From positions 1-28,199 of the forward strand of contig JAKMXF010000090.1 of the NCBI GenBank assembly GCA_024704765.1: a DNA stretch of 28,199 nucleotides, read 5' to 3'. Position numbers and translations under genes: made by a program. Below, one piece after another: positions 1,901-28,199 of this stretch (positions within the stretch are counted from its first letter, which is position 1; the number at the start of each line of letters is the position of its first letter). This stretch comes from Oopsacas minuta (Eukaryota; Animalia; Porifera). Under the pieces are notes generated by a model. That model was not told where the DNA came from and made no database searches. It saw only the letters and a program-made list of their open reading frames with translations.

Positions 1901-2288
1901 CGATTTCAAGAATTTCATCGGGACATTAAATTTCAAAATTGTATCTCATCGTTGCAGGCCATAGAAAGCTGAAATTAATGCCATGTACAGTAAACTTTAG
2001 CTAAAAACGGAATGCTAGGTACCTCAGTTTAATTTCGTTATTTTCTTGTCTAACATGTTCTGACATTCTCCATTCCTTTAATGTGGAATATCTCACTGGA
2101 AAATATGATATTTTGAAATTTTACCTTATTTTCAATTGTATTTTTAACTCATGGTGACCAATATTAATAAATTATTAATCCAATGGTAGCATTTTAGTTA
2201 AATAGTCTTAAAATCAAGCTAAACTATTCAAATTCGACTCGTGATTGATTGTTTACAACTAATTTACTATAGACAAATATATTCATTA

Positions 2289-2504
2289 CCGTAAACTGGG
2301 GCTACTTTGGACCACTGGGTTTGCTTTAGCCCATATTTCAAAGCTCCAAAGAAACTAGATTGGATTCAGCATTGTACTTGAAAATAACTTTCCAAATTTT
2401 TAACGAATTTTCAAATATCGGTAGACAATTTCGAAGACAAATACAATATCTATTCAATAAGTAAGAAATTTCAATATTTGGGCCAAAGTAGCCCGAGTTT
2501 ACGG
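2289..2504. mobile_element. MITE with ~25-bp TIRs and TA target duplication (pogo/Tc1-mariner type)
   Basis: Left end TA|CCGTAAACTGGGGCTACTTTGGACC; right end GGCCAAAGTAGCCCGAGTTTACGG|TA. TA flanks both ends (2287-88, 2505-06). Confidence 0.78.
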
Positions 2505-2927
2505 TAACATACATTAAAGCTACTTGACTTTTTCACTGCCTAATCCTGAAAATCGTGTACAACAGGTTAAGCAATGATTGTGAGCTAATTGCTCTAAATG
2601 ATTAATTATAGATTTATGGCAGCAATTACGATTGTCTATGGTCTGAAGTGAAGCGGATAAAAAAAAGCAAAACCTTACTAAATGACATTCCAACTTAAGA
2701 CTAAATATTTTAAAGTTATTAACAACATCAGAACAACATATATAATCTCAACATAATAGAATTATCATGGGTATGGAGGGGGTAAAACTGTTGAAATGTT
2801 AATACTCCAATTTTCGGGGAAAATGTATTGATTTAATATATCGTAGTTAAACCAATCCATAAAGACTCGATATACATTCAAAATGGACATGGTATTTTGA
2901 ATGTGCAATTGCAATTTGACATTATCT

Positions 2928-4865
2928 TCAGTACTTACTCAACCTGTTATTCTTACATTGGCTACATATTAGAATAAGGCTCTTTAAATAATGGAGAGAG
3001 GAATCAATTGTTAAACATTTGAGACAGTATATATTTCCACAGAGTAGACATGGATATCTAGGATCCCCCTGGAAATATAGAAAATTATTACAATTACAAA
3101 AAATAGTATTAGAGAGACTCTGATGTAAAATAACAGGTAGATTCATTCTCAATCTAATCTGGCTAGACCTTACTTTATACACTTCCTCCAATTGTTTTAC
3201 AAAAGGAGGATTCCAAAGATTATTCAAACTTTCTAACTGATTGATCTCTTTTGTTAAATATATTATGTAATCGGCTAGCAGTTTGTTTTGTATATTTAAG
3301 CTGGAAAGTGTCTCAGCAGGAACTTCAGTCGGGTTTTTATAACAACAATACTGACAGTATAGTTTACTCCAGATTCTGAGATAGCATTGTTCTATACGGA
3401 TCTTTAAACACTTTACATTAGATGATCTAGCCTGATCGAAAGAAGGATTCCTGTAAATTTCTACATGAGAGTACAACTGCCCCCAAAGAGAGTTGGTACG
3501 AAATGGAAGAAATAGCTCAAAACGGTGTTTATCACTTTCCGAAATAAATGTCCCATATTTACAGCGATAAACTTCATTAGCTATAAATAATAGGAGGGAC
3601 TCCCCAAATTCGAAAAGAGTTGGAAATTGCACAATAATTTGCCAAACTGCATCCAAAAATTGTATGAAGATTGGTGAATAATCCTTAGTATCACCTTGGA
3701 TATGTGCGCAGCGTTTTGTGAAAGGATGACCAAATGATATCCAATCTTTTTCTATAAGGATGATGAATCCGTGGATTGTTCGATAAAAAGGTTCAACCAA
3801 TATCTGGGTTATGGAAGAGACCTGAGAAGTTCGGTCCCACCCGTCCGAACAGTGTACTAATACATTTGCCTTTTCGATTACTAATGCGTGTCCACACAAT
3901 TGAGAGGCCTCAAGAAGTTTCCTTATTAAGGATAACCATTCACAATTCTCTAATAGCGGAGATTGTTCATACTCCTTAAAGTCGTAACGGTGAAGTACTT
4001 CTTGAAAATTCTTGAAACTATCGCGTACAACATGTATGTTTGGAATGTGTCCCCAAACAAATTTAACATTTGGATAAAAATCCAAACACTCATAACCTTT
4101 GCCAGCGGCCCTCTGAGCAATAGCATTAATAGTGGGTCGAAGGTCAACTACATACATATATGAACAATTATCATTGCAATCTCGAATGCAACGAATTAGC
4201 TCCTCATCTTGTATACTACGTTTTGAAATAAACCTTAAAGGTTGACTACTCCTGCAAAGAGCTGTTCCATAGAGGTCATGAAAATATGTAAGGGTAGGGA
4301 GTCTGGCCTTAGAACGAAACCCTGCACTTTCGTGGATCAAATTTCGAATTATTGCTTCTTTTGGAAAGCTAAGGTACCGAGGATAAGTCTCGCATAATTC
4401 GAATCCCAAATTCAGATAAGAGATAGTCCAATGTCTGGTAGGTAGGCCCATACGAGCAAATTCAGACAAGGCTTCATAAGTATTCCAACCAATTTTAGGG
4501 GTAGTAAAGTCAAGCTTAAATTGCGGGCAAGAACTAAAAGCACTAAGTTCTTCAATGTTTCTAGGGTATACGAAATGTCTAAGTGTTTCGTAGAAAGATT
4601 GAGAATCTTGTTCGCTGGAAAATAATATCAGTAAAGAACGAAAATTCTTACATTTTATAGAGAGAGGAATACCTTTATGTGAGAGTTGGAGACGGACAAA
4701 ATCTAGAATGAATGAATATTCAATCCAAAGTTCATTATCATTAAAATCCTCTGAGAATATAATATGAGTAGTTGTTAAGGCTAATCTACCAGGTATATAT
4801 TTAAGTTTTTCATAAGGTGAAGAAATAAACACGCCATCAACACGTGAAATCTTGATAAATTCCAT
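2928..4865 (-). CDS. MTMR6/7/8: Myotubularin-related phosphoinositide 3-phosphatase (MTMR6/7/8 subfamily), 645 aa, single exon
   Basis: The N-terminus MEFIKISRVDGV resembles MTMR6/7, followed by a PH-GRAM region. Myotubularin motifs CETYP, FRSKARLP and LCRSSQP are present, the catalytic VHCSDGWDRT is intact, and IEKDWISFGHPF and SPIFIQFLDAVWQ follow. It ends with a coiled-coil-like segment and a Cys-rich FYVE-like domain. Confidence 0.95.
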   Translation of the reverse strand: MEFIKISRVDGVFISSPYEKLKYIPGRLALTTTHIIFSEDFNDNELWIEYSFILDFVRLQLSHKGIPLSIKCKNFRSLLILFSSEQDSQSFYETLRHFVYPRNIEELSAFSSCPQFKLDFTTPKIGWNTYEALSEFARMGLPTRHWTISYLNLGFELCETYPRYLSFPKEAIIRNLIHESAGFRSKARLPTLTYFHDLYGTALCRSSQPLRFISKRSIQDEELIRCIRDCNDNCSYMYVVDLRPTINAIAQRAAGKGYECLDFYPNVKFVWGHIPNIHVVRDSFKNFQEVLHRYDFKEYEQSPLLENCEWLSLIRKLLEASQLCGHALVIEKANVLVHCSDGWDRTSQVSSITQILVEPFYRTIHGFIILIEKDWISFGHPFTKRCAHIQGDTKDYSPIFIQFLDAVWQIIVQFPTLFEFGESLLLFIANEVYRCKYGTFISESDKHRFELFLPFRTNSLWGQLYSHVEIYRNPSFDQARSSNVKCLKIRIEQCYLRIWSKLYCQYCCYKNPTEVPAETLSSLNIQNKLLADYIIYLTKEINQLESLNNLWNPPFVKQLEEVYKVRSSQIRLRMNLPVILHQSLSNTIFCNCNNFLYFQGDPRYPCLLCGNIYCLKCLTIDSSLHYLKSLILICSQCKNNRLSKY

Positions 4866-6272
4866 ATATCGAAACTAATGAATAAATTATCCAATAAAAG
4901 TTAGATAAACTATATAACAATGAATTGATAATCGTAATAAAATCGGATACATATATAATTTAAGAGATATTCTTTAGAATTGTCCAAGGGTAATTGCCAT
5001 CCATTTAATGTGGACGGAATTGTAACAAATTAGGGTTCGCATATAATTATTTAGAAGGGAGTGTTTTAACTTTTTGGAAAGCATAGCCATGCCCAAACTG
5101 AATTGAATAGTAGACTAGATTAGTCGGAAGATACCTCAATTAAAATAGATAGAGTCATTAAAAGGAATATGGCATCGAGTTTCACACTGACTTTAATATC
5201 ACTAGCGCGCTTCGCTTGCTAGGAAAGCTGCGCAACAGCTAAGTGCCTCAGGTTATCGTAAGTATTAAATAGCTAAATATCTTGATTGTTTGGGTCGCTG
5301 CACGATCTGCTATTATATCGGCACTACGTGCCTCGAGCAAAACTTTTGGTAATAATTTATACATGGTCAATCCAATTTCCATTTAATTGCCTTCTGTCAT
5401 AATATTGCATGTCTTACGTGCTTAGGTTGGGAATTTTGGCACTTGTGGTTCTAAGATAATAAATTTCTCAAAACATTGAAATTCAGGAAATTTGGTCCAT
5501 TTGTACAGTAATGATGACGTCACAATGTCCGATTTTCTACACAATTTGGTGAAAAATGATGTCCATTCATGGCTGGAGATGTGAAAAACTAGAATTGTGT
5601 AGTTTAGGGGTGGTTTATCTCGGTCAATAAAATACTGAAAATCGCTTCAATCGATGATAAGTATCATACCAGCGCCGACACCAACTATTTTCGCTAATTT
5701 CTCCTAAACTATACAAGAATGGTTATCGAATAATGTTATTCACTGACATGAACCCCAAACTACTGAATATCAAAGTTTTCAGAAATCTAGACATGATGGA
5801 ACTACATTTTTCATCAAAATTGGACCAAAACAGGACCAAAAGCACAAAAATAGGGAAAATTGCAAAAAATATATTGTGGTACTACTAAATCTTCATGGAT
5901 TTCAATAAATTGTACATGATGAATCAATGACTCATACATAACATAAAAAGTAGTAAGTGAGGTTTATTGTTTTACGAAAGGGGCAACTGATGCGCCTTGT
6001 TTGTTTATACATGTATACAATACATAAATATACAGTCTGTTACATAATTATTTAAAATGGAGATGTTTTGTTACAAAACCTCAGTACTTTGTCTTATTTC
6101 ACTCAGGCTACTTGCGTTTCGCATGTCCATAATGGTTTAATGATATATTTTGCTAAATTCCCTGAACCAAGTCATCTTATTTTTCCGGAAATTTTACTCT
6201 TTAATATTAATTATGACCTCCATTACTATTAATTACCCTAATTATTTCCCTACTTGACAATTAGCTCTGAAA

Positions 6273-7244
6273 ATGACTCAATACAATGAGAGGGAAATTG
6301 TGAAGACACTTCTACAATCCAGAAAGCTTTTGCCCAGGAAATATCTGTTAATTATGGAATTTCCTTAGGTACAGTTTACAATGTTAAACGCCGATTAGAT
6401 GAAGGAGTACCGCTATCTCACCAAAAGGGCGTAGGGAGGCCCAATAGCTTGCGATCTTCCATCAAATTGTCTATTCTTTACCAGGTATGATGTAAACCAT
6501 ACCTCTCTTTGCGAACATTAGCAAGTCGTACAGGTAATAAGGCTTCTTATCAGACTGTCCGGAGAGTATGAAGGACGAATTTTACAACAAATCTTACCCT
6601 GTTCAGATGTCTATGCTGAGTGAAAAAATCGCATGTACAGGATAGAATGGGCAAAAAAGTACAAATACCCGAAGACACAATGGGCCCAAACAATATTTCT
6701 TGACGAGATGTCAATCTGGCTCTCAAGGGGAAGATTAAGGATGTGGACAAAATCCAACAAAAAAAGGATCGCCCCAACAACGAAGCATGTCATAAAGATA
6801 CACGTGTGGGCTGCATTCTCATCTATGGGTACATTCACATTGTGCGTTATGACTAACAATATAAACAGTGAAACGTTTTTAGATATAATGGAAGGATATT
6901 TGATTACTCAGTCACAGGTATATCATGAAAGTCACTGGCGATTACTGATGGATAATGATCCAAAACACACCTCGCAAAAGGTCCGCACCTGGTTGGCACA
7001 AAATGTACCAAATCAGATTCCATGGCCTTCACAAAGTCCAGATCTTAACCTCATTGAAAATTTATTCCCATGGGTGAAGCAAGAGATACTTAAGCTAGGT
7101 CCAAGGACAATTCCAAAACTGAAACTCAATTTAGAAGGGGTCTGGAATCGTATTCAACCAGATTTTCTCAAACCTTACTGGAAATCAATGCCCAGAAGAT
7201 GCCAACTAGTAGTAGAGGGGAACGGATATCCTATTAATTATTAA
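6273..7244 (+). pseudogene. Tc1-family DD34E transposase, frameshifted N-terminus
   Basis: ORF 6633-7244 has IFLDE, VWAAFS, LMDNDPKH and WPSQSPDLNLIENL, with 34 residues between the second D and the E. The HTH region starting at ATG 6273 (MTQYNEREIV...GRP) is broken by frameshifts and stops. TIRs were not resolved. Confidence 0.9.
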
Positions 7245-7738
7245 GATCTATTACTTCACTCTCAATTTGGAGCATATATGGCAATGTATACTGTAACTCT
7301 AATAATTTTCGGCTTAAGTAGCTATTCTAAATAAATAAGTATGTCCAAATTGATCGAAGAACCTGGAACACCCCATGGCTGAAGTGCACTATGGCTGATC
7401 CTAACTACCAATAACTCATGTAATTACCAAATAGGTAATATATTTGATATGAAACATCTAAAGATTATTGCGCAATCTTGATATGACTATAAATGGGCAT
7501 ATTCAGGATTACTGCACAAATGTTCGAGATATAATTTCAATAAGTATCATCTGGGATAGGATGTTGGGTAGGTATTACAAATCAGTTAGCATGATTTGAC
7601 TATAATTGTAACAATTATAGAGTCCTAAGTGAATATTGACATACAAGGGAAATACATCATTTTAGCGATAACCCAAGAACTAGCAAACTATATAATGACA
7701 TTGTAATTTTATGTCAATCAATAAATAAGTTATATGTA

Positions 7739-9079
7739 CAGTATTTTCAGAAATTATTGAAAGTATTTTTAATTAAGTAGATCAATTGGTTGTTAATATG
7801 TATTGAATTGTTCATATATCATGGGGTAAGATTAGCTTAGTTACCACATAAGATACAGTCAAATGAATCAAACAGCTTAATATTAAATTTTCCTACGCAT
7901 ATTCTTTAGGCATTCTGAAATTCTCTGGTCCATTGATAGGCAAAAATGTCTCAAAAAATAGGATCAAACGTTTCCTATATCTCTAAAATCGCTTCCCTTA
8001 GTTCACCAACCGTTCTAATAGAACGCTTTAATAGTCTCTTCTATAAAACTGTCCAAACATTCTCTATTGGTGCCAAATCAGGGCTGTTAGGGGGCCAATC
8101 AATATATTCGGGAACAAAATCCATCTTCCAGGCCTTTGTCGCCTTCCCTTGTGTACTGGACTATTGTCGTCTTGTAGTACCCATTCATCTTCGAATAGTG
8201 CGTTTGCTTGTGTTATTAGTTGTCCATTTAGTGTGCCAATGTAACCCATCTGATTGAAATTTTCCGTAAAAATTGAGAGCGGCATTGCCCTAGAAATTCC
8301 ATCCCATAAATGAAATTTTGGTGGCTGTTTGAATAATGGGAGGAAATAGGCTGTCCAGTTTTTGTCCATACTTTTACTGTATCAGAATCAAGCTACACTG
8401 AGCACTCGTTGGTAAAGACCGATGGGCTCCAATCGAATCCCTTCATGCTCTTGCACCATGCATTTCTCTTGGCCAAAATGATCGTCGATTATGGCTGTGA
8501 CTCTAACAACTGATGAGTAATGAAGGTTCCGCCGCTTCATCTCAGTATGTAAAGTCCTCATTGCAACTTCCGCTGTCAATTTTGGGACTATTTCGCTCAG
8601 TGTTATCCTGGGATGAGCCTTGACCAAATTTACAATCCTCCTTTTGTCATTTGCTCGAATTTTCCTAGGCCTTTCTGCTCCACTTCCATTTTGAATGCTC
8701 AAATTGATATATTTTCTTGAGTACCCGGTACACAGTTCGCTCTGGAATCTTATTTTTCCTGGAGATATTACTTGCTTGAGTTATCCGGCTTCATATAATG
8801 TTTCAATCTTGTTTCTCTGCATTTCTTGGAATTTCATTCTGAGAAAGGAAATTTTGATAGATGTCGGAAGTCAGAATAGGGGGACTAAAACCGCATTGCA
8901 ATAATATGGTATCCAATACAATACATTTTCAAAAATTTCACGATGTGAAATGTAATCTTATTGGTATCCAATTTTTTCTCCAAATTGTGGTTGAACAGTA
9001 ATCAATTCGAATAAATAGCTGCTGATATTTAGCTCCAAACAGTCTATTAAATTACTGACAATAAGTTCTGAAAATACTG
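7739..9079 (-). mobile_element. Full-length degenerate Tc1 element with TIRs and TA TSD
   Basis: TIRs CAGTATTTTCAGAAATTATTG (from 7739) and the reverse complement CAGTATTTTCAGAACTTATTG (ending 9079) match 20/21. TA flanks both ends (7737-38, 9080-81). Confidence 0.88.
7878..8837 (-). pseudogene. Tc1 transposase pseudogene
   Basis: Pieces read MKFQEMQRNKIETLY / KIPERTVYRVLKK / GAERPRKIRANDKRRI / VFTNECSV (first catalytic D changed to N) / WVLQDDNSPVH / PDLAPIENVW. There are multiple frameshifts and stops. Confidence 0.88.
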
Positions 9080-9439
9080 TACATACAGCTGAAACCGTAT
9101 TCCTGACCAATTCTGTGCAGAGAATATTGTCAGGAAAAATCGATTACTTATACTATGAAATTCCTATGAAAACAATTTTGGACCAAAATATGGTAAAAAA
9201 TCCAATAATTTACTTTGATGGAGATTGTAGGACAATGACTGCTTAGAGACATCGAACATTCTAGATAAATCCCCCAGGGTTTTGGGCTCAGTGGCCGTGG
9301 TTAGTGGAGAAAGACCTTAAGATACTTCTCGGGTACTGAGACGCTTCTCGTTTGCGGAGGGCATTGTTAGGTCAGAAAACAAATTCTGTTCAGAAAATAT
9401 CCAATTACGTCATTCTCATGATAATTGTAGTCGCTGGTG

Positions 9440-10035
9440 CCCATACTATGTTAATCTCGTAGAAATTGGCATCACCGGTTACCACATTCTGTCGAGATAA
9501 TTTGTCAAAAGGTGTTGACCAGTGATATCAGTTTCTATTAACTAGCCAGTGTCAGAACCAGTTTCCCCAACTTCCATGGTTATCACACTTCCTAAGTTCG
9601 TGAGGATTGGGTTCACTGTTGATACCAGCCAGAAAGCCACATATTAAGGTAGGTAGTGAGTCAGTTATGATCGTACTGCTTGGTGTTACAGGTAACTAAA
9701 CTCAGTGAAGTTCATTGAAATTTGCATCACTGTTCGACCAGCTCCTATGTTCATAGAAATTGGAGAACCACTGCTAGTACAGCTGGTGACAACACTACTT
9801 CAAGTTAGTTGAAATTGGGATTACCTGTTACCACACTCCGTCAAGATCCTATCTTGACGGAATGTGGTAATAGATGATGCTCATTTCCACGAGCATTAAG
9901 TACTAGTGTAGCTAGTGACTCTAATCTCTATGAATTTCACCGAGTGTAGTAACCAGTCCATTTCAACCAACTTGACTTAGTGGTGTGACTAATTGTTTCA
10001 GATGTCGATGAATATACGAGTGAGTCTAACATTGC
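9440..10035 (-). pseudogene. Decayed repeat-protein coding remnant (VVT-G/S-D/N-P/A-NF motif)
   Basis: An imperfect nucleotide motif recurs near 9463, 9605, 9718, 9758 and 9812. On the minus strand it translates to VVTGDANFYEINIV, VVTGNPNFN*LEVV and SDANFNEL. There are many stops and the family is not identified. Confidence 0.35.
9828..9870. repeat. Near-perfect inverted repeat (20-bp arms, 3-nt loop)
   Basis: TTACCACACTCCGTCAAGAT-CCT-ATCTTGACGGAATGTGGTAA; 19 of 20 positions pair. Confidence 0.9.
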
Positions 10036-10832
10036 AACAAGTGTTTTGATCGATGAGGGAGGTTACTTTGGAGGGGGGAGTTACGTTCTGAATCCTGTAT
10101 CTAAATCAAACTTTCACCTACTGACAAATTAGGTTAAATGAAAATTCATTTATTTTGTGGGCGAAATTGATTGAAAATATTGCCATTAATACTTCCAGAC
10201 ATCCGGGCATCTGTGCGAGGCACATCAGCCGGAATTGTGTAATTTGTGAATGCTTTTGGATTCCACTGTTCCTGTGTTTCTAGGAATATTCATTAGAAAA
10301 GCTCTGAGGTCAGATTTGAAATGCTTGGAAATTGTGGAAGATGGAGTGTTTGAGTGGGTCCTGGAACAATTTTCGGACAAAGGTCTGTCCCAAACTTTTA
10401 GAAAATATGTGTGTGAGTTTGTTTTGAGCACAATTATGTCATTTTTAGCCTGTTTCCGGGCAAAAACTGTTACACATTTGTTTACATTCAGTGCAATGTG
10501 AGATTGAATCAATAATTATTAGAGACAAGGAAACAACAAATAGTCAAGGTTTTTGTTCTTTGGGACTTTTGCAAATTTGTTTAACTAGAAAGCATGTGAT
10601 TGTAGAATCTGAAAGCGCTTTACCAAGTGTCAACTTCCTGCAGAAGACACTCGATTAGATACATGTTTGTCTTGAAGTTATATTAGTAACATTTTCAATC
10701 CATTTCGCCCTCTAAATCCTCAACGAAATATCATTTGGCAAAATAATTCAGGATTTGAACAGTACCTCCTCCTATAATGTACCCTATCTCTACGATAAAA
10801 AAATCTATTAAACTGTCAGACCCACTCGTATA

Positions 10833-10865
10833 CACAGTACCTTAAAATGGGAGTTAGCAAAGAAT
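10833..10865 (+). repeat. Copy 1 3' end signal: heptamer CACAGTA + 17-bp spacer + GCAAAGAAT
   Basis: Read directly: CACAGTA (10833-39), CCTTAAAATGGGAGTTA (10840-56), GCAAAGAAT (10857-65). Confidence 0.88.
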
Positions 10866-11331
10866 GGGTATTTTCATTTGAAATAGACATATACAGTGTA
10901 TTATCAGTATATAGGTTATTATATGCTAGGAATCATTTGGTGCATTCAAAATTTTTATAAGGTTTCTATATCTCATATTCTGACGTCATAGCTTTATGCT
11001 GAATTTTGTTTTTCTTTAATATCTGACTGTATAACAATTTTAGCCCTATAAATTCTATTATTTGGCTATAGTATATCATATCCATGGAACCAATTACAAC
11101 TGTTAGAAATACAAAATTACTCATAATTTTTATAAAATGACGTCATACACATGTTTTTCATAATTTTTACTTTTCTACTTCATACTTTTAAATGCGTTTT
11201 TAGAATTTAATAATATCTTTTTTGCTAATATATATCAATTCTGACAATTTCTGAATAAAAACAATAAGCAATGATATTAAGGGATGCTTTGTTTTTATTA
11301 TTCATTCACTAATATTCTGTAAACTACGTTG

Positions 11332-12765
11332 TTACAATATCATATCAATAATAAGGCCCTTAACGATATTATCAACAAATGATTCCAATAATTCTGTTGC
11401 ATTATCTCGACAGCACTTAGCTTTTCGGGTATGACCGTGTTCTCTGCACTTTTCGCACACCACTGTCGACCGATATTTCAGTAACACAGGATCGCTTTTA
11501 GATGAGAGTCTGACATATATACCGGCGATATTTCCCTCGAAGAAGTTTTCTTTGCTAGATTTTCCCAATATTCCCTGGTTAATTTGTTGCAGGCTTCGGA
11601 TCCTTCTTCGCTAATGCATTTCAATCCATACCCCAATTCATCTCTCTCATTATTCTTCAGAATGGCCTAGATATTTATGTAAAGTCAGTGTAATGTTCAC
11701 CCAGGGGAAGGATTGAAGAATAAGGAGATAGGTGCCTGCACAAAGGTTGCCCAATTTTTCTGTTTTGATCTTTCTGTCTGAATTTATGATTCTCAGAATG
11801 ACAGATAATTGTGTGTGCAATTTATAAAGTGAGTCCCCATAATCAATCTTAACCAAAGACATTGCGCATTCAATAAACTTGGAATCATTTGAAAAAGCTC
11901 TTCGAGCCACACCACCAGTGGAAGTAGTGCCTCCTTTGGGGTCTGGTTGGTCAATTCTTAGACCTGTTACTTCTTGAACTATGGTTCGCACATCCATCAT
12001 AGAGTCTTTAATTTCTTTTGATGATGGTGACAATGTGAGCTTGTTATAATTCAGGTGGTACACAAGTAAATTAAACCATCTAAAAATGCAGGTATGGGAA
12101 TGTAAGGGAGAAGCAGGTAGAATATCTATTGTTAATAATGGTTGGTGAGTCAGGTTAAATCTTTGATTTGTTGGTAATGAAAAGAAAGCATCAATGTCTT
12201 CCAGTTCTCCAAATAATTGAATTGCGTCTGAAATGTTTCTATTAATGGGATAGCCTTGCAAAATTAAATCACGATCTTTTTAGTTCTTTCTGCTTTGCAG
12301 TACATAGTTGGCAACTCGCACCTCCTGCTCCTGAGAGAATACTTGCCATTTTACCATCAAGTATTGATCCAACAACATCGACAAATATATGTTTATCATC
12401 GGCAAAATAGAAACCTTGGTCCTTAATTTGATCTGTTTCGGGATTGATGATATCTTCCATAAATTGGCGAATATTGCATGATTTTCTGTGGCAGCAAGAA
12501 GTAAATTTGGACGTTGGGAGAATGGAGAATTCGGACACTCGTTTTTCCAAAGTTCCTTTCCACAAGAATTGACAATGTGTACTACTTTGAAGCAAAATAG
12601 GATGAATGATTTGGTAGACGTATTCGTATTTGGTTGATAATATACGGTATTTTGCTTTCCAGATCCATCTAAACCATCAGCAATCTGAAATCGGAGAGGA
12701 AAATCCTCATTTGAAGGAGACGGTAGAGTGGACATAATTCTACAAAATGTATGGTAGACAAATTG

Positions 12766-12841
<76 letters not shown>

Positions 12842-13551
12842 AACTGGGGCTGTAGGAATCGGGTACAGTTAAATGATACTTCGTAGTACTAAATTATTTC
12901 TATGATCGGCCACCCTCTGATATGTAGGAAAGTGAATTTCATTAGATAACAAAAGTTGTCGTAGTAGAGTATACTTCCTCTTGCCAATCTCTAGTAGATC
13001 CAAAAGAAATAATGCCTTGTCCACATCCAATTCTTTGCTTTTGGATGCACGCCTGAAATGACCAGTGAATTATCCCTGCACAATTGATTTAGATACCCTT
13101 GCAACTTCTCGATTGTCTTCTTCATTGCACAACAATTGCAAAGCAAGAGCTGCAATTGTAATTTCAGAAGTTTTTTCGATTACCGAGATGGACCCAATAG
13201 ACTCAAGGACACTAGAGATCCGGGAACGCTGATGTTGCAATGAAAGATTGATAAGTTCTTTCTTTTGGCGCACCGACTTAGTTTTTTGGGGGGCTTGTGA
13301 AGCTATAAATAATTCTGAGCAAATTTCAGAATGTCACCAATCTCTATGCAAAGATTCAAGTGATTTCTTTGAAGTTCTAATCACATCTCGTATTCTACGT
13401 AGAATCAATTCAAGTTTAGCCTGCTTCGCATGGCCTATCTATGGAGATCACTAAGCAGAGTTGTTTGGACGCGATTGCCATTTGCTTTCAGGATTCTCGC
13501 TAAATCGAGAAGGAATTTGGGGGAAGTCATCGGAGCAATTGGTTCAGCCAT
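11332..13551 (-). pseudogene. RAG1-like/Transib transposase, copy 1 (frameshifted)
   Basis: Starts at ATG 13551 (MAEPIAPMTSPKFLLDLARILK). It contains an NBD-like RQKKELINLSLQHQRSRI, catalytic D1 in IADGLDGSG and D2 in SILDGKM. ZnC2 CQLC, SPLHSHTC, GGVARRAF and ZnH2 LHKYLGH follow. The catalytic E lies in SEEGSEACNK, then SDPVL and the tail CEKCREHGHTRKAKCC. Confidence 0.92.
12768..12840. repeat. (CA)36 microsatellite inside the transposase coding region
   Basis: Uninterrupted CA run, 12768-12840. Confidence 0.97.
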
Positions 13552-14240
13552 TGATCACGGATAAATTATCTATGAGAAAATAGAGGTGTATGATTGAAAA
13601 CATAAGTACACGTATATACACACATTTATATGTTTAATTTTGTGCAATAATTTCCAAGAAGAATTAGAATTAGACGGGTATTCAATTACATAGTTACAGA
13701 TATCACTTTAGGAATTTCTATAACAACGATTACAGACGATGTAATGTGACTAAAAATCAAAGTTGCGCACCGTGTCGGGGCCTGTCATCTTCATATAACA
13801 TAGCATAAATTGTAAACAACAACTGGAATTATTTTCGCTTTGACGTTCCTAGACGATCTCTTTTCAGACACTTTCAAAATGTTATGCATGGAAAAATGGG
13901 GTTCATTTTTCACCCTGGGTACAACAATCCTTCACATGAAAGGCACACAGTTTAACATCTGATAGAAATTTGAAATCAGCATACAAAATTGTCTAGAATA
14001 GATGAAACAATAGATCCCTAATATATTCCATAAAGAATCAGAATCAATGTGAAAATCTTTGATATTTTGAATTCTCTGAAATGATAATTTCAGCATCAAA
14101 AAACCCACAAAGTTACGATTCAAATTTACATTACTAATAGGCCCCCAAATGATTAGAAAATTGGAATGGATGCTCTTAGAATGTTTAGAAACACAATGAA
14201 ACCATAAAGGAATGAAAACATTACTATAAAAAATTTCTTA

Positions 14241-14264
14241 ATTCTTTACTACTAAGCTACTGAG
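14241..14264 (-). repeat. Copy 1 5' end signal: heptamer CTCAGTA + 8-bp spacer + GTAAAGAAT
   Basis: The reverse complement of 14241-14264 is CTCAGTA GCTTAGTA GTAAAGAAT, and it abuts the TSD. Confidence 0.85.
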
Positions 14265-14269
14265 GTATA

Positions 14270-14560
14270 TTCGTGATGGAGTTTGTTGTCCAGTGATCCG
14301 AATTTCTATTGATTTCCCTGAAGCGACATCAATAGATGAACTTGCTGGATTGTGGTAACCAGCGATCCCAACTTCTATGGACCTGATAGAATAGGGACAC
14401 CAGAACACTAATAAGAATCTATTATATTCATTGGAACAACAGTGATGCCCATATTGAAGTCCTTGATCATGTGGCAGCCTCAATTTAATTTACATTGACA
14501 AAGTATTGTAACCAATTTTCCCAAATTCAATGGTTACAACAGTTCCTATCGTTCGTGAAA
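14270..14560 (+). pseudogene. Second decayed copy of the VVT-S-DPNF repeat coding remnant
   Basis: Plus-strand pieces LSSDPNFY, VVTSDPNFYG and VTNFPKFNG carry the same motif as 9440-10035, in the opposite orientation. Confidence 0.35.
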
Positions 14561-17500
14561 ATTGAGCTCACTATTGATACCTGCCAGAAAAGTTCATATA
14601 AAGTTCGGTCATCAGTAGGGGTGTATTGGGGGGAAAGGAGGGGGACGCTAACGCCCTTCTTATGGAAATATTTGGATTATTTTTACTAGAATCTTTGTTC
14701 AGATAATTGAGTTCAACATTACAATCGGCATTTTCGGCGAAAGCAAAAAGATATTCACCTTGATTTCACTATTAATATCTACTGACCAGCAACGACAGCT
14801 CTAGGACATATAATCTACTTATAATTGCTCCTACATGGACCCGTTTACATCTTTGGTAGCTATTTGAATAATTCTTATAATAAACAAGTGCCTCATGGGT
14901 TGAATTGGCACCGTCGGCCAGCGAAAAATCTCCACAGAACAGATTAAAAGTTCCCAGACCCGTGGGCCCCCAGTTGAAGAACACTGACTTAGACGCTACA
15001 AATTCTGTGTAGTCTTCTACTGGTAAATCAGAAACAATCATTGACTAATATTTATACCAAATAATTATAAATAATTATTAGAGACTTTAAGAATCGGGTC
15101 AGAATTGAGGATCAGTTTGATACAAAGTCTGTGGATAGTAAATTTTGAAGTAAATAGGTTACTAAATCTCCCCGATGAGAACTTGGCTTTTCTCTATATC
15201 ACGTTCATGTTATCTATGGGATTTTCGAGTTCAAATATTAATGAAATTGTTCATCCCAATATGCATGATGGTTGAAATTTGAATCGCAATAAAAGATCAG
15301 TATTATATTGATTAAAAATGGTTTCCTATAAGTTATAGGAAATTAACCATGAATGATGGATTTCGCATAATATAAATTTTATAGAAACCTTTCCTATCGC
15401 GAATGAAAAAATCCTTGAAAAACATCCATGCATGTATAGCCAATAATTCATGAGAAATTTCAAATCGAACAAAGGAAGGAGTACGTGAAAATAACTTAGA
15501 ACAAGATTAAAGTAAGTATGCGAATCACTTCAATGGATATATAATTTATAAGGGAGGAATTTGTAATAGCATCATGCAAAATGGATAATGCAAACTCATC
15601 ATGGAATAATTCATCAATCCAGTACAAAATTTGAAATCTCAAAGTGTGGCAAAATTTTGGAAATTCTTAGTGTGGATGGCCTCAGGGAGGAAGTCACGCG
15701 ATTACGACTCAAATTCACGTAGGAGCTTCACTATCACCACAGTAGGGCATTTATTAACCCCCGTCGTGGAACGACAATAATCTAAGAAAGTTAACAAATG
15801 TCACTTAAACTAATTCCAAGGAAAGTTTATAGCCATCTGTAGAGCAGCGACTTAGCGAACGAAGCCCGAAAGATTTATCACTTTTGCGTGGACTATGGAT
15901 AATAATTTCATATAATTAGCCAATTAATCTGAATTCGGCACATCAATTACGGAGCATACTGAATCGTAGAGAATGATTTTCTAGCGAGGCCCTGGGTGCA
16001 GCTGATTTATAACCGAAGCTCTCAAATATGGTATAATATGAATGAAAATAATACTCCATAATTATGAATATATCATAGAGCTAACTGTTTATAAGTTTTT
16101 CAGGAGTATTTAAGACAGTTGAGATCAATTTATATTCTGAAGGAAGTAAACACACAGAGTAACAGAAATTTGGAAAGAGTCATAATCGAAAAAGTCGTAT
16201 ATGAGTCCCAGGTTTCTGATATTATCAAGCTGTTTTCGGACTCGAACAGTTTATTGGTCGAATACACGAATAATTTTATCGTGGTGAATGAATTAAGTGG
16301 GCTTAGAAGTCTTACAAATTCACATGACGAGGATCCCAAAATGCAAATCAATTATGAAATATAGAATTTGTTTTCATTAATTTAGTTATATATTCGTTGT
16401 AGAAAATCAAGACAAATTTATTGCAATTTTTGAGAAGAATGAATTCTCAAATCCTGAATTATGATTTGTAATTTATAAGATATAGCAGATATTGTTGAAA
16501 ACGAAACAAAATCTATGATAATCTTTTCGTTGATAATCTTTCTTGCAATTTGATTGCTAAATTTCTCAAAGTAGAGTTCTCCTGCTTGAGTTCTGTTAAC
16601 TCTCGTCGGACTACAGAAAAAAATAATGAATACAAGAGCAGAGTTAGAATAGATAACAACCAAATAGAAAGTTGGGCCACATCTTACATAACTCACGGAG
16701 AAAATTTGGAATATTCAACTTTGCTCTAGCCAAAATTATAGTTCTATCGATTAGTCATAGTATGCCTTCAAGTTCTACATACTGTGCAACCTCAAATACC
16801 TGAACTCGATAGAACCTTTCAAAGCGTCTGGAAAATCAAAAATTCGGTCGAGGTAAATTATACCTAGTGGAATAGGAACTAGGACCAGGGGGGCATATCA
16901 TGATAATTGAGGTTGCAATGTAAAAGTTTTCATATATCGAGAATATTCAAAATTATTGAACCCGTAGGTATTTTAACGCATAGAAAACGCCTCCAAATAA
17001 TAAAAACATGCCCAGATTTAAGTGCAAACCAAAATACACGATTAACAAAGAGACACACAGACCCGAGAAGTATGGTCTTAGGACCAATGGTAATATATAG
17101 TAGTATCTTTTATTTCTAGTGTTGCTCAAAATATTTCTTGTACATATAACCACCAAATGATCCTCAATGCGTAAATCACAAGAACTAATTTACATAGCTA
17201 TCCACATTACATTTTAGAGCGCACTTAAATTGGTTTACAGTACTGCCTCCATCGCAATATACATGTACTCAGTATAATGCCATGCCTCATGCTGAGACTC
17301 CAAATGAACGCTTATACTACGAGTGTTCGATAAGTTCTGATTAGTATCCCCTAAATCTTTTGAAATACAGATTACACACACTCTATTAATGATATAATTT
17401 TCAAAATACTCCCCTTTTTGCAATAAAATATTGTTACGATTGAGCACTCAAAAAAATACATATTCAAGCCTTCAGGATCGCTAAGTTGTAGATACTGGAA

Positions 17501-17756
17501 AATAGCCGTTCCAAGTGCTACACTGTAATTATTCTTAAAAGCCGAGAGGTGATTCTTCAGCATAGGATATGGGTAGAAGTCACAGGGGGCTAAGTGTGAA
17601 ATGGATGGTGGATGTTCCAGCTTAACCATCTCCTTCCGATCTAATTTTGATTTGGCCAGCATGGGCATGTGAGGGCAGACATTTTCATGTTGACTTAGGG
17701 ATAACAACTGTAACTCGGGCTACAGATCGAGGGTCATTTTCGACAGCCTGCGATAC

Positions 17757-17780
17757 TACAGTGGTTTGAATGCAAAGAAT
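17757..17780 (+). repeat. Copy 2 5' end signal: heptamer TACAGTG + 8-bp spacer + GCAAAGAAT
   Basis: Read directly: TACAGTG GTTTGAAT GCAAAGAAT. Confidence 0.82.
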
Positions 17781-18446
17781 AGACAAAAAATATATTTCAT
17801 TTTTAATGGCTTAAACTCGTTCTTGGTTGTTTGAATAATGTTAATTTCAAATTTGAATTTGATCGAATACATATAGCTCTCACAATTTGAATTTGAAGAA
17901 TCAACCAAAAATAGTTCCATTTGTGGTTTCATTGATGCTCATATTAACACCAATTTAAGTTTACTTGATGCCATCACAGAATACTCCGAATCAAATACGT
18001 ATATTTAATTTTCTCAACACAATTCAGCTATGCTAAATTTGATTTTCTCATTTCATCACAGTATCTTCACTACATTTTGATTCAAAGTTGATTTGATTAA
18101 TGGTACTTTAGAGGTACAATATTTTGTAATAGAGAACTTCCAAATGACCGCACAAAAAACACCACTTAAAATTAATTCCAAATGGCATTATAATATCAAG
18201 AAAGACATTAAAATGATACGCCCGAAACAGTGCGTAACATAAAAATTTCAGCGAATTCCATTGTCACCTTTTTGTTGCTATGCAATTTGCATAATGATTA
18301 ATTATGACAAAGTATTTCAATATGCTGAATTTATATACTCGATTGCTGCATTCCAATTACCAATAAATATAATACATAAATACATGATTAATATGACATT
18401 AACAAATTGAACTGCTGATAATCAACCATTTTCTACGCTATTTTCA

Positions 18447-20630
18447 ATGGCCCAAGAACTAACTTTCCCTAACTCTCATCTTGAATTTGCGAAGATTTTG
18501 AAAGACAACAACAACTGTATCTCGACGACACTCAGTTTCTTTGAGCAGAACTCTCAAATGGACTTCGAAGAAAGGAAACAATTGGAAGCAATGGTCCTCC
18601 GAGTATTAAGCAGGATTAGGAAGGCAAAGAAATCGCCTAATTGCTTAGAGGGAGACTGGTGGCATTGTGGTATATCCATAGAACCAGACTTGAAGAGGAA
18701 CCGTATTTAAGATACCGTTGAGCTGTCCTCAGATGATGAAGAAGTCATATCCACGCTCTCTGCAAACCATAGGAAGAGTATTGACAATCTCACGATGCAA
18801 CAACAACGCTCACGACTTTCAAATGTCCTGGAATCTATCAAAGCACTCTCAATCGTTAAGAATACTTCAGAAATCAACTTGCCTTGCAACTACAATCGAA
18901 CCAAGCAAAACAGCGTGAAATAGCTAAAGTTTCAAAATCTGTAGTCTATGACAAGTTTTCGGGTCAATTCGGTAAGATGTTGAAGAAAGAGCTCGATGTT
19001 ACCAAGACAGTGTTCCTTATAGATCTCCTAGAAATTGAGAGGAGGATACACACACAACTCCGACATCACTTGCTATTTAGCGATATTCGTTTTCCGGCAT
19101 ACTATAGGGTAGTAGAAGAAAGAGATAGCATAATTTTACGGTCGGATATCCAGATGTACCCCAATCCTGAAACTCCACTTGGTGTATATATGCCATATGC
19201 CTACCACGTCCGCCATACTTTTTGCAGGCTTATGTCCACGCTACCGCCACCTCCAGCTCAAGATTTTCCCCTGCAACTCCAGATAGTAGACGAACTAGAT
19301 GGCTCTGGAAGTCACACTGTATATAATCAATCAAACACGAATACAGATACTAAGTCGTTTATCATATTCTGTTTATGTTTGTAAAGATAATAAGCAATAG
19401 CGACCGCGAACTCTGGAAAAATAACTCTTCCAATTCTCCTTTTGCTCAACGTCCGATTTTCCTTCTCGCTGCGAAAAAGAAAACGAAGTTAATATCAAGC
19501 GATTTATGGACGATCTAATCAATACTGATACTGATCTGATGAGAAGTGAAGGATTTACTCTTGGCCCTGATCAGCAAGTACGAGTCGACATTGTTCGATC
19601 AATGCTTGATGGGAAAATGGCAGGAATTCTATCTGGGGCAGGTGGGGCAAGTTGTCAATTATGCACAGCAACACATAAGGAACTCAGTGATCGTGAGTTG
19701 ATAATACAGGGATTTCCTATCAACAGGCACTTTACTGATGCAAATCAACTTTTCGGCGAAATGGAAGACAGCCACTCGTTTTTCTTACTTCCTTCAAACC
19801 AACGTTGTAACATAACGCACGAACCAACCTCAATAATAAACATCCTTCCAGCATCTCCGTTACACTCGTACACCTGTATTTTCAGGTGGTTCAATCTACT
19901 AATTTATCATTTGAATTGTGGAAAACGTACATGGTCACCAACATCTTTGGCAATAAAAAATTCTCTGATATTTGTCAGAAATCTGATTGAAGGAAACAGG
20001 AATGAGGATAGGTCAGCCAAATGCAAGTGGAAATACTAGCTCTATTGGTAGTGTAGCTCGTCGAGCATTTTCCTGTGATTCGAAATACATTGAGTGTGTA
20101 TTGTCAGTTGTTGAAACAGAACACAAAGAAACACTTTCAAAACTACATACACACTTGTCAGCTATTCTTCGAATAATCAATTCAGACAGGGTCATTAACA
20201 CCGAGGTCTTTGGTGATCTATGCACCGATACATATCTCTTGAACGTTGATTCATTACCTTGGTTGAGCATTACCCAACATCACACAGGGCATTAGCTCAC
20301 TCAGAAGAAATTTTGAAATAGTTCAACCTTGGGCGAGATCTGAAAAGTTTCTCTGAAGAGTAATCCGAGGCATGCAACAAGTTGCTAAGAAAGTATAGGG
20401 AGAATCTTGCGAGGAAGTCTTCATTTGAAGATAATGCAATAGACATTTTCGTGAGACTGGCCTCTGGAACTGACCCTGTATTGAATCAATTTCGTTCAAG
20501 TTTAGTTTGTGTAAGGTGTGGGGAACACGGCCACACAAAAAGAGCAAAGTGTTGGAGGGATAATACCGAAAATAGATTACTAGCTTCTTCCATAGACGAA
20601 ATTGTTGATTCATTTATAATTAATTCATAA
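18447..20630 (+). pseudogene. RAG1-like/Transib transposase, copy 2 (frameshifted)
   Basis: Starts MAQELTFPNSHLEFAKILK, with an NBD-like HRKSIDNLTMQQQRSRLSNVLESI. The core has IVDELDGSG (D1), SMLDGKM (D2), CQLC, SPLHSYTC, GSVARRAF, HRALAHSEE and SEE*SEACNK (E). It ends with TDPVL and the tail CVRCGEHGHTKRAKC. Confidence 0.92.
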
Positions 20631-20903
20631 ATTCATTAAAATGTTAAATCTATATCACTCTTATTCAAATACTATACATGTTAATAGTATATATACAGGG
20701 TAGGAGATTATTCTTATGAAGTGTAATTTTCAATGAGTTTTATTAAATAATTTTAAAATGTGACGTCATCATAATATGTGATGACGTCATATCCAGAAAT
20801 CTAGAAGCCATAGAAGAAATTTGATTACCCATTCGATTCCTCGGATACGATAGCCTATTCGCAAATAATACACTGAATATGGCTATCTGGTACTAGAATA
20901 CCT

Positions 20904-20936
20904 ATTCTTTACAAACTCCCATTTTAAACCACTGTG
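20904..20936 (-). repeat. Copy 2 3' end signal: canonical heptamer CACAGTG + 17-bp spacer + GTAAAGAAT
   Basis: The reverse complement of 20904-20936 is CACAGTG GTTTAAAATGGGAGTTT GTAAAGAAT. Confidence 0.9.
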
Positions 20937-23409
20937 CTTATAGACCACAACGCTGAGCCCATCTTCTAACTCCAGGATAAGATAGGACACACATCATACT
21001 ATAAACGTGCACTCAATCAAGTTGTATTTAATGTGCAGTTTTCCGAAAGAGCGTACGTATCTTGAAGTATGCCCTTTGTTCAATTTTGAAATTCTTGTCT
21101 GATGACATAAGAATTATTCAGTATATAAATCAGCTGATCGAAATGCATGATAACTTGGGAAATACTTAATTTATTGCAATGAATGAAAACAAACTAGCAA
21201 ACAACGAATAACATAACATAATAAAGTGGAGATTTATGGAACTAATACAATGTTTCTCTAATAACTTATTGAACACCAGTGGTATTTAGGATAATTGTAC
21301 AATCCGATTGGAAATTTCAATCTGGGGTAACTCGCCTACTTAGAATTCAAATATCAAGTCAGAAATTATAGATTTTTAATAGGCTTTGAATTACCACATA
21401 TTTTGAATATCAATAATTATCTAATAATTAGCACCTTCAAAAAGTGCAAATCCAAAATATTTTTTTGAAATTCGTGAGAAACATATGTTATTCTATGCAA
21501 ATTACTAGATTGCGGCTACGAATATAGACTATACAATATATAGGAGCGGGAAAGAGTATACAATTTATGACAATATATTTGTGTGTTGAAATACTTTTGT
21601 CCACTTAGTGTATACACTAATGCAATGGTGGTCAGCAGGCCATATGAGGGGAGGGCCAGCAGGGCCATTTTCCCCGAGCTTCCTGTTCCAAGGTGGTTCC
21701 TCACCCTCCAAGGTCTTATAATATTACAGGATTCATGTTAATAATTTATAATATATTTATCTATTCACAATATTTTGATTAAGTAATGTTCCTGTTAATC
21801 CATAACAATAATATACTTTCAAAATTTAGTTAAAACCCAGGACGATTTTATTATATTGAGCATATCGGTGGAACTCGGTTAGTACGTACTCCGGTACTCG
21901 GAGAATGCGTTCTTTGGTTTAGGTCTTTGAACTAAAATCTATCTATAACATAGATCTTTATGTAGTACAAAATCTTTTGGTGCCTACTCACGGATAGTAC
22001 ATACTAATAATTCCTTCCGGAAGGGGTACGTCTTATCTGAATTATAATGTATTATATTTGATATGAAAAGGAAATTTAAAAGTGGTGCTACTCATTAATT
22101 GATGCATTATCACAAAAAAGGTTAGAAAAGCAATTTTATACTACAGCTCGTTATTCACATTATTACTCTTTTAATAACAAATAATATTATCACTTCTTCT
22201 CATCTTTTCTTTAATTGGAATTGTAGTCCAATTTACAGCACTTGCCCGCCCCTTTGTAACCCTCTCAGAGACCCTAGTGGTCACAAAAACCTTGGACTAG
22301 GGATTGAATGCATACCTCAATACAAACATTTGGAAATTATATTTGTATCGATACAATTTTGATGGCACATTTTAACCCGAATAAATAAATAAATAATTTT
22401 GCATTTGACAATGCTAGCATTCTATCTCTACAAAGTACTTCCAGGCCGAAGTGACATCATCTGCTTGCTTACTCTTTAATTATGTCAAAGAATGCTCCAA
22501 TGTTTCACTATGTAATGATTTACTTGTTATACTTATCATTTCAAATTCTATCACTTGGAATCTACAGATTTTGCATCATAAAATATCAAATGTTGTCATT
22601 ATATGGTTCGCGGATTCAAGAGGTATAGTTGTGGCCATAATTTGCATATATTTGCCAATATGCACCCATAACTTCACCCATGACCAAATCATCTTACAAA
22701 CGTATAGTATAAACCCAGGATTTCATGTAGTAATTCGGAATCATACACCTAAAAATTCTCCCCTCATATATACGCGTGTCTAGAGTGTACATATAGTATC
22801 ATGGTATGGGGGTCTTGCTCCAATTTACATTAACTCAAATTCATCAAATTTTGTCAACTAACTAGCAGTTCACTAGCGACCGAATTTTATCATTTTTGTT
22901 TCTATATTGTAAATGTGTAAATTTCAATGAAACCTTTGTTGAATTTTAGTTAACAAGGTTTTCGAGTAAATAAATTTTAGGTATAACTTCTCTATAATTT
23001 TGATTTGAGAAGTAATTTTCCACCAAACTAATAGGATGAAGCTCTTCAGCTTAAAAACATGGCAGGAGCCTCTCTTCGCTATGGCAACTACCCGAAAATG
23101 GTCCATAAATTGGTCCACTGCTTCATGACACAGCAATAATTAAAATTACTGTACTATGACCAACACAGTCGAAGTGTTGAGTTCGTAACGAAAAGAGAGA
23201 CAAAATATTCGACTACTTTTAGCCAATTCCTTCACCAAATACAAGAATTTGGCACCTTTCTTATTCCATAAAATCACCCATTTCCCAGCCGTATTTGGCT
23301 AAGTTCGAACTTAAATTCTTTGTGGATGCGGTTCCTGCTCTGAAAAGTAGCTCCACCAATTTCAAAGATTATTCCAAAATTGTTGTCCTTTTTGATATTG
23401 CATTGTAAA

Positions 23410-23573
23410 TGTGATGCACCCAAATTTCTTAAAGTTCATAAACTACAATAATTGATAGATATAACCAGCAAAAGCTCATGACAATTTACTAATAAATATA
23501 TATAGCTATTACTGCATAATCTCCAATAGAGAGTAACTTATGTCAGTTAATTTACTCAATCAACTCTGTTACA
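23410..23573 (-). repeat. 3' LTR
   Basis: Aligns with 26773-26940 (shared GCTCATGACAATTTACTA, ATATATAGCTATTAC, CATAATCTCCAATAGAGA, GTTAATTTACTCAATCA). It starts TGTAAC on the minus strand and is preceded by the purine tract AGAAGTAGAGAGGGAG (about 23577-23592). Confidence 0.85.
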
Positions 23574-26745: not shown

Positions 26746-26772
26746 TTCTAAATAACCACTCTCTGGTACCAA

Positions 26773-26940
26773 TATTATGTACCCAAGTTACTTAACGTTA
26801 CTGAACTACAATATTTTATACATGTGATCAAAAAACGCTCATGACAATTTACTACATGAATATATATATATAGCTATTACACCATAATCTCCAATAGAGA
26901 ATAACTTTGCTAGTTAATTTACTCAATCATCTCTCTTACA
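26773..26940 (-). repeat. 5' LTR followed by PBS-like TGGTACCAGAG (26761-26771)
   Basis: Homologous to 23410-23573 and starts TGTAAG on the minus strand. The PBS resembles the tRNAi-Met type TGGTATCAGAG. Confidence 0.85.
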
Positions 26941-28100
26941 GAGATATGACTTTCAAATTCTAACATATAAATAGTGTGATGCTAATGAGATGGATGTTGC
27001 CCTACCTTAGATAATGTCTCTGTGTCCGGTTTTATGTTATAGGTTGTCAATCCGTAGTACACTGTCCATGTTATTCCTGTTAAACCGTGTACACAACTTT
27101 TATTTCGTGTATTTATCTTTGAAATAAAGTTGTACACAACTGTGTACTCTCAAAGAGAACTGAAACTTCCTTTGCAAATTTTATTCATGAAGAAAATATT
27201 TCAGGATTTATATAGTGTTGTCAGAATTCTAGTATAGGCTGCTCTCGATATCATGTTTTGAGTTAAATAAGTTCCATTGGTAAATTTCTGGAGCGTCACC
27301 AATTTAGACACATTAAATACGTTGGCAAGGTAGCTAGAACAATTACGATGCTTATCCACATCTGTGAATCGTGTTGAATTGATTGTTGGTCAGTAATGAA
27401 TTCGGCGAAGTAAGAAACTTCACATGGTTGGTGTGAGTAAAGTGTTGAAAAACGAATAATATTACTCTCTTTTAATTGGAAACTCCCATAGTTATAATTT
27501 AACTTCGAAAGCATAATGTGTTCATAGAGGACGTGATGAATTGATTCATCCTTTTACTACCAATTTAGCATATATAGATTACTTGTGATGTCCACCAGAG
27601 AGGCAAAATCTCTAATCCATTTCGCATCACTGAGCTCTGGAACTTCCATCCCTTCCTGTCTCATAAAGGTGCCCAATTCCGCTCTCAGCTGGTAAAATCT
27701 TAGCAAAATTCAACATCTACCTAACAAACCGTCTATGCTAAAATATTTGAATCGCCATACTGATTATCGATCTCTTCTCACATATGCTGAAATTTAGTAT
27801 GATTTAAGCCTTTTGCACGCACAAAGTTCATAATCTTTATGACTACACTTCTTGTATCTTCGGAGTTCTTGCGGATAAGGCCTCGAGATTGCGGATACAA
27901 TGCTTTCTTACCAGTTTTCTTTCAATGCCAGCATTTCTCATTTCCGACCATAGTATAGGACTATCTGTAGTTACCACACAACTACAGTGAACCCTCGCTA
28001 ATCCAAACAGTAGAAAATAAAGAATTTTTGGTTTAAAAATAATAATTTTCAATCGGAATTTGAAATTTAATATGTACATAGCACATAATTGCAGTAGTAA

Positions 28101-28199
<99 letters not shown>
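28101..28199. repeat. (TAG)33 microsatellite running off the window end
   Basis: Uninterrupted TAG run to the last base. Confidence 0.97.

Follow-up and report, generated by a model that had tools for sequence, protein, structure and literature searches.

The window analysed here, a 28,199-nucleotide stretch of the genome of the glass sponge Oopsacas minuta (contig JAKMXF010000090.1 of assembly GCA_024704765.1, positions 1 to 28,199), contains two decayed Transib transposons, termed copy 1 and copy 2. At each of their ends a heptamer is followed by the inner box GYAAAGAAT, at a distance of 8 bp at the 5′ end and of 17 bp at the 3′ end (8/17 layout). Copy 1 is located on the minus strand at 10833-14264 (3432 bp), belongs to a family that we call A and shares 89-92% identity with two further copies in O. 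minuta. It is flanked by a perfect 5-bp target site duplication (TSD), GTATA, at 10828-10832 and 14265-14269. Copy 2 (family C, 3180 bp) is located on the plus strand at 17757-20936 and its flanking pentamers, GATAC and CTTAT, do not match. The two copies thus lie in opposite orientation, with their 5′ ends pointing inwards and 3.5 kb of unrelated DNA in between. In the coding part their DNA is approximately 66% identical, and along a 157-nt part of the 3′ end it is 73% identical.

Both copies share a common reading frame from approximately element position 700 to 2880, which is interrupted in each of them by frame shifts and stops. ORF (open reading frame) pieces place the transposase remnant of copy 1, with several frame disruptions, at about 11335-13542 (minus strand, approximate limits) and that of copy 2, which is likewise disrupted, at 18447-20630 (plus strand). 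A (GT)n microsatellite (12760-12848) lies within the coding remnant of copy 1, where it is read as VCVCVC… in one ORF; it was skipped as a repeat in the read layout.

Logan contigs from three O. minuta runs reach a summed depth of 1000-5000 inside copy 1 against 30-80 outside, which is 30-100 times the depth of the flanks. The depth breaks at 10833 and at 14262-14264, and past these breaks the contigs continue into mutually different flanks. The termini of copy 1 are therefore fixed by the perfect TSD together with the depth and flank breaks of the other genomic copies. Internally deleted derivatives of the copy 1 family were also present among the Logan contigs. A self-BLAST of the window revealed no clear empty-site paralogue of the copy 1 insertion site. 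In run X3, two contigs link 10749-10751 to 14351-14451, approximately 80 bp to the left and 90-190 bp to the right of copy 1. This junction is not a clean empty site, since its breakpoints are off the element ends, and the flanks may themselves be repeated. Altogether, copies 1 and 2 are independent, dead insertions.

Asymmetric ends in six O. minuta elements

The 3′ end of copy 1 (10833-10865, plus strand) consists of the heptamer CACAGTA (10833-10839), a 17-bp spacer and the box GCAAAGAAT (10857-10865), and its 5′ end (14241-14264, minus strand) of the heptamer CTCAGTA (14264-14258), an 8-bp spacer and GTAAAGAAT (14249-14241). The 5′ end of copy 2 (17757-17780, plus strand) has the heptamer TACAGTG (17757-17763), an 8-bp spacer and GCAAAGAAT (17772-17780), and its 3′ end (20904-20936, minus strand) has CACAGTG (20936-20930), a 17-bp spacer and GTAAAGAAT (20912-20904). 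An earlier note on this DNA, made from its letters, had described this arrangement at four ends, and all four were found where it had placed them. Two matches each to CAGTR-N8-GYAAAGAAT and to CAGTR-N17-GYAAAGAAT were counted in the window, compared with 0.00 expected from 100 shuffles. The box alone occurs six times (1.19 expected); the two additional matches, at 6473 and 13030, are without a heptamer and represent chance or coding sequence. With approximately 35% G+C, the window is of a composition in which short A-rich words are common, and a chance likeness would have to be considered on this ground. The shuffles, which yield no expected matches for either spaced pattern, and the other O. 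minuta elements, which add eight further genomic ends in the same register, refute this explanation, and its probability is practically nil.

The outer 3′ ends of the two copies form a 102-nt inverted repeat (75% complementary), which would fit one 10.1-kb composite element (10833-20936) with symmetric 17/17 ends and with the inner 8-bp ends as debris. Since copy 1 has a perfect TSD of its own, a single composite is ruled out. In addition, the outer flanks (GTATA and CTTAT) differ, the depth of other copies drops at 14262-14264, and single 3.3-kb elements elsewhere in the genome have one 8-bp end and one 17-bp end together with their own TSDs. The composite was rejected on the TSD and depth evidence, and we consider it extremely improbable.

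In the consensus, the 5′ end reads CACAGTG, GYTTA, 3 bp, GYAAAGAAT, so that upstream of the gene heptamer and box are 8 bp apart. The consensus 3′ end reads CACAGTG, GYTTA, 12 bp, GYAAAGAAT, and here, downstream of the gene, they are 17 bp apart. The heptamer consensus of the families is CACAGTG at both ends, from which copies 1 and 2 differ by one or two point changes. The earlier note had remarked that the two ends of an element share heptamer position 7; an A is indeed present at both ends of copy 1, but it is private to this copy. Among the other genomic copies (23-27 contigs per run), no indel with a share of 5% or more was found in the 5′ heptamer-spacer-box segment of copy 1. When the 5′ end of family A was compared with two family B copies and copy 2, the first 30 columns gave identities of 0.78, 0.66 and 0.67, which dropped to 0.12-0.26 directly past the box. 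Conservation of the 5′ end thus reaches inwards as far as the box.

Contrary to what had been assumed, the spacers at the 3′ ends have not drifted in sequence: those of copies 1 and 2 match at 14/17 positions. Their 12 bp contain the block AAATGGGAG or a close variant, and the conservation of this block between families is about that of the box. The variants AAATGGCAG, AAATGGAAT and AAATGGGCA occur at the 3′ ends in less closely related families. The shared block, AAATGGG(A/C)(G/A), is located 13-21 bp inside the 3′ ends (10845-10853 and 20916-20924 in the window; also in loci L002, L003 and L004, described below), and the 5′ ends are without it. It is kept across Transib families whose proteins are only approximately 40-65% identical.

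Four further O. minuta elements with TSDs were identified in loci of GCA_024704765.1 that had been fetched via their encoded proteins. Locus L001 contains an element at 644-8620 (TSD GACAA/AACAA) in which a second one is nested (4520-7886; TSD CTTGG/CTTGA), and both have 8- and 17-bp spacers at their 5′ and 3′ ends, respectively. In locus L005, the element at 12867-16239 (perfect TSD CCCTA) also has 8/17 spacers, and that at 9040-12314 (perfect TSD TAATA) has 8/16 spacers. Taken together with the window, the 5′ spacer is 8 bp long in 6/6 elements and the 3′ spacer is 17 bp long in 5/6 and 16 bp long in 1/6. Three families can be told apart: family A comprises copy 1 plus two more elements (89-93% identical), family B comprises two copies (90% identical), and copy 2 is the sole member of family C. 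Between families, DNA identity is only about 66-68%, so that the bipartite, length-asymmetric ends are conserved between diverged elements, as the earlier note had proposed. The 8/17 layout is real, present in multiple copies and conserved across diverged families. The L001 locus also shows that insertion of one Transib into another occurs in the O. minuta genome, since here a family B element carries a family A element; a DDE_3 transposase gene (1404-2432) is found within the bounds of the family B element.

More distant relatives yielded four additional elements. In O. minuta, L010 (8401-11377, TSD TATAG) has the box TGGAAATAG at 10 bp in the 5′ end and at 20 bp in the 3′ end. L004 (1173-4237, TSD AAATC), from an animal (ENA assembly ERZ25071281), has TGGAAATTTG at 10 bp in the 5′ end and at 19 bp in the 3′ end. 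L002 (4290-7372, TSD GTGTA) and L003 (9328-12064, TSD GATAA), both from ENA assemblies, have GCAAACWTT at 17 bp in the 3′ end and no convincing box in the 5′ end, where at most GCAnnnnTT at +7 could be seen. An NDUFS3 gene from the ENA assemblies with L002-L004 indicates an animal source; its best named matches, among them the demosponge Halichondria, are approximately 65-70% identical. Outside of the window, the 5-bp TSD is thus perfect in six elements and matches at 4/5 positions in two. No usable end pairs were obtained from loci L006-L008 (long relatives from Tara and other metagenomes), where the ends were unrecognisable or the contig ended. The offset of 9-10 bp, with the short end always upstream of the gene, recurs with different boxes, and its details are not universal. 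Spacer invariance, which the earlier note had proposed to check on other copies, holds for all 5′ ends (8 bp) of families A, B and C and for three of the four further 3′ ends (17 bp), with the single 16-bp spacer as the exception; L002 and L003 have no clear 5′ box.

A RAG1-type transposase and its domains

Direct searches of the window ORF pieces against Pfam and PDB gave no match, and homology was established via relatives. A 203-aa ORF piece of copy 1 (11650-12261) retrieved 560 relatives from a representative protein library, 16 of them at E≤1e-30. The long relatives pass the Pfam RAG1 model PF12940 with 47.7 bits (cut-off 25) and match vertebrate RAG1 as well as HzTransib (6pqn, E 3e-22) and amphioxus BbRAG1L (6b40, E 3e-12). 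The intact relative P0177, modelled with AlphaFold2 (mean pLDDT 84.8), aligns to HzTransib with a Z of 33.8 and to RAG1 with a Z of approximately 32. The lineage is thus of the RAG1 type, as had been proposed from the letters.

Each element is 3.2-3.4 kb long and has one coding region, which leaves no room for a second, RAG2-like gene, and the ORFs between copies 1 and 2 have no Pfam match. For these reasons we assign the copies to Transib and not to RAGL. The features of Transib are all found here: a RAG1-core-like DDE transposase (via the relatives), a 5-bp TSD (copy 1), a CAC heptamer and a lack of any RAG2-like gene. The convergent pair of RAG1-like and RAG2-like genes that defines RAGL elements of the ProtoRAG type is absent. 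The ends are likewise not a V(D)J-type pair of recombination signal sequences (RSS), which has 12/23 spacers and the nonamer ACAAAAACC, and show 8/17 spacers and GYAAAGAAT instead.

The relatives have approximately 160 residues N-terminal to the start of HzTransib; residue 165 of P0177 aligns to HzTransib residue 5. A profile of this N-terminal part was built from 11 proteins, two of which were translated from the element loci L010 (O. minuta) and L002. Its matches include the crystal structure 3GNA of the nonamer-binding domain (NBD) of RAG1 (E 1.9e-4) and the N-terminal part of BbRAG1L (E 1.3e-4), and the top 18 are all RAG1, RAG1L or Transib chains. The P0177 model has three helices in residues 91-165, which align with residues 389-459 of mouse RAG1 in NBD-containing structures. 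The NBD fold itself is shown for the relatives, and both window copies keep the NBD-like region by homology to P0177. In copy 1, the counterpart of P0177 residues 96-230, which cover the NBD-like domain and the beginning of the core, was located by tblastn at 12839-13261 on the minus strand (37% identity, E 6.5e-19). In copy 2, homology to the first helix region of the domain (P0177 residues 80-127) was found by tblastn at 18729-18869 on the plus strand. Among the relatives, P0118 has the motif GRPRK, and P0040 and P0048 have GRPP.

At the other end of the protein, both copies have a C-terminal tail with the zinc-knuckle motif CX2CX3GHX5C (copy 1: 11410-11496, minus strand; copy 2: 20469-20552, plus strand), which is also found in L003 and in both L005 elements (L005_A and L005_B). 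By its motif, this tail resembles the CCGHC tail of amphioxus RAG1L, which clamps the bases adjoining the heptamer (PMC10462144).

Reading of the ends and comparison with known systems

The window holds two dead single-gene Transib insertions with conserved 8/17 ends, and in the overall reading, which we consider probable, this layout would be recognised by a transposase dimer through three of its parts. The dimer's catalytic core would read and cut at the heptamer, the CCGHC-type zinc knuckle probably holds the GYTTA next to it, and the dimeric N-terminal NBD-like domain probably binds the two inner boxes. The offset of 9-10 bp is about one helical turn, so that the box would face the same side of the helix at either end. 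Short and long ends would stay distinguishable, much as in a 12/23 RSS pair.

A further step, which we regard as possible but less likely than not, is that the RAG2-less sponge Transib enforces pairing of an 8-bp with a 17-bp end via its NBD-like domain, and that the other boxes and spacings of the sister families (10/19-20) avoid cross-mobilisation. If this is true, an obligatory rule of asymmetric synapsis would be older than the capture of RAG2 and present in one of the earliest-branching animal lineages. Several observations weigh against the overall reading of the ends. The 3′ spacer of one family B copy is 16 bp long, and L002 and L003 keep the 3′ layout but have no clear 5′ box. The modelled protein, P0177, is a relative from a 10/19 family and not from an 8/17 family. 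The GRPR/K motif is absent from both copies and from P0177; the sole match in the copies, G[KR]RK, belongs to a later helix and is unrelated. HzTransib, in which most of the NBD is missing, is active with symmetric 12/12 RSS substrates (PMC4840297). Finally, since the 3′ spacer is conserved in sequence, its AAATGGG block may be a binding site instead of a length ruler.

Some of these points would also suit a different history, in which a 9-bp indel in one end was tolerated and kept because the 3′ block has another role, for instance as part of the 3′ untranslated region or as the site of another factor, and in which no pairing rule exists. The conservation of the 3′-specific block across families, the 16-bp variant and the family without a 5′ box are compatible with it, as are the published activity of HzTransib on 12/12 substrates and the finding that BbeRAGL is largely insensitive to end asymmetry. 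Such an indel would, however, have to account for an offset of 9-10 bp that recurs with the boxes GYAAAGAAT, TGGAAATTT and TGGAAATAG in families with proteins only approximately 35-40% identical, and for a constant polarity in which the short end is always on the 5′ side. The proteins moreover bear an NBD-like domain, and in RAG it is a domain of this type by which 12/23 is enforced. We regard the tolerated indel as possible but rather unlikely.

Asymmetric ends are known from the literature on Transib and RAGL elements. Transib families with 5′ and 3′ ends that resemble RSS12 and RSS23 have been described, and the 12/23 rule was said to be derivable from such ends (Kapitonov and Jurka, 2005; PMC1131882), a derivation reviewed by Yakovenko et al. 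(2021). According to Tao et al. (2022; PMC9435367), every Subgroup I Transib combines asymmetric ends with a CTT1 (CCGHC-type) tail and an NBD equivalent, and a later study noted that asymmetric ends, CCGHC tail and NBD are all known from Transibs (Martin et al., 2023; PMC10462144). The earlier note had presented the locus as a possibly undescribed model of how the 12/23 rule came about; because asymmetric Transib ends and the derivation of 12/23 from them were published in 2005 and extended in 2022 and 2023 (PMC1131882, PMC9435367, PMC10462144), this idea is not new. We found no literature joining Transib with sponges or Oopsacas, and sponges are not mentioned in PMC9435367 and its searched supplements. 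What appears to be new is the host phylum, the exact 8/17 spacing and the GYAAAGAAT box, with the principle of asymmetry being already known.

Among the insect elements, Transib5 of Drosophila melanogaster and Transib2_AG and TransibN1-3_AG of Anopheles gambiae are like the sponge copies in having a single RAG1-core-like gene, a 5-bp TSD and a CAC heptamer. They also have the same polarity, with a short-spaced 5′ end and a long-spaced 3′ end (PMC1131882). Their spacers, however, are approximately 12 and 23 bp long (difference 11), whereas those of the sponge are 8 and 17 bp long (difference 9), and their inner box is A-rich (AAAAAAATC-like) instead of GYAAAGAAT. By features, the sponge elements (8/17, one 8/16) resemble Subgroup I Transibs in their asymmetric ends. 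Further marks of Subgroup I are a phylogenetic position nearer to RAG1L and the alpha11-alpha12 region. By sequence, the core of the relatives is nearer to HzTransib, a Subgroup II element, than to BbRAG1L, as judged by the PDB scores. HzTransib from Helicoverpa zea (6pqn) is the best core match (Z 33.8, E 3e-22). Unlike the relatives, it is without the approximately 160 N-terminal residues including the NBD-like domain and without the zinc-knuckle tail, and its ends show little nonamer similarity (PMC4840297).

Two RAGL elements come close to the sponge ends. In AanRAGL of the alga Aureococcus anophagefferens, two conserved end elements are 4 or 13 bp apart (PMC9435367). This is the same 9-bp difference as in the sponge, but AanRAGL carries a RAG2-like gene. 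PflRAGL-A of the hemichordate Ptychodera flava has ends composed of heptamer, TR2, asymmetric spacer and nonamer, with a 10-bp difference (PMC10462144). It is like the sponge elements in its heptamer, the conserved stretch adjoining it, the asymmetric spacer, the nonamer-like box and a protein with NBD and CCGHC tail. It is unlike them in having a RAG2-like gene, an AT-rich nonamer-like box and GRPR/K in its NBD, which the window copies are without. The V(D)J RSS share with the sponge ends the CACAGTG consensus, the bipartite build, two spacer classes about one helical turn apart and an enzyme with an NBD-fold domain. They differ in their 12/23 spacers, the nonamer ACAAAAACC, a weakly conserved spacer sequence and the requirement for RAG2.

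The sponge example, which spans several families and includes an NBD-like domain and a CCGHC-type tail, adds to the evidence that bipartite, length-asymmetric ends go far back in the Transib/RAG lineage and did not first arise with vertebrate V(D)J recombination. The O. minuta families with their different spacings and boxes could serve as a natural panel for how a RAG1-type enzyme measures a spacer without RAG2. The locus itself holds dead copies only.

Neighbouring genes and repeats

Outside of the two insertions, the minus strand at 2928-4865 contains an uninterrupted 645-aa ORF for a myotubularin-related phosphatase (Pfam Myotub-related, 383.8 bits, and a GRAM domain), which looks like a single-exon host gene. 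A 203-aa ORF at 6633-7244 (plus strand) with a DDE_3 transposase domain of the Tc1/mariner type is a further DNA transposon remnant. The segment 17372-17707 was considered as a mariner remnant and is unsupported, with no Pfam match.

Three short units, palindromic or bounded by terminal inverted repeats, resemble miniature inverted-repeat transposable elements: 945-1070 (26-nt arms, 96%), 2286-2507 (29-nt arms, 93%) and 9789-9909 (59-nt arms, 75%). A direct repeat of approximately 170 nt (23408-23573 and 26771-26940, 81% identity) has its two units 3.36 kb apart and could be similar to a long terminal repeat or a segmental duplicate. The window closes with a (TAG)n microsatellite (28086-28199), which continues past its end.

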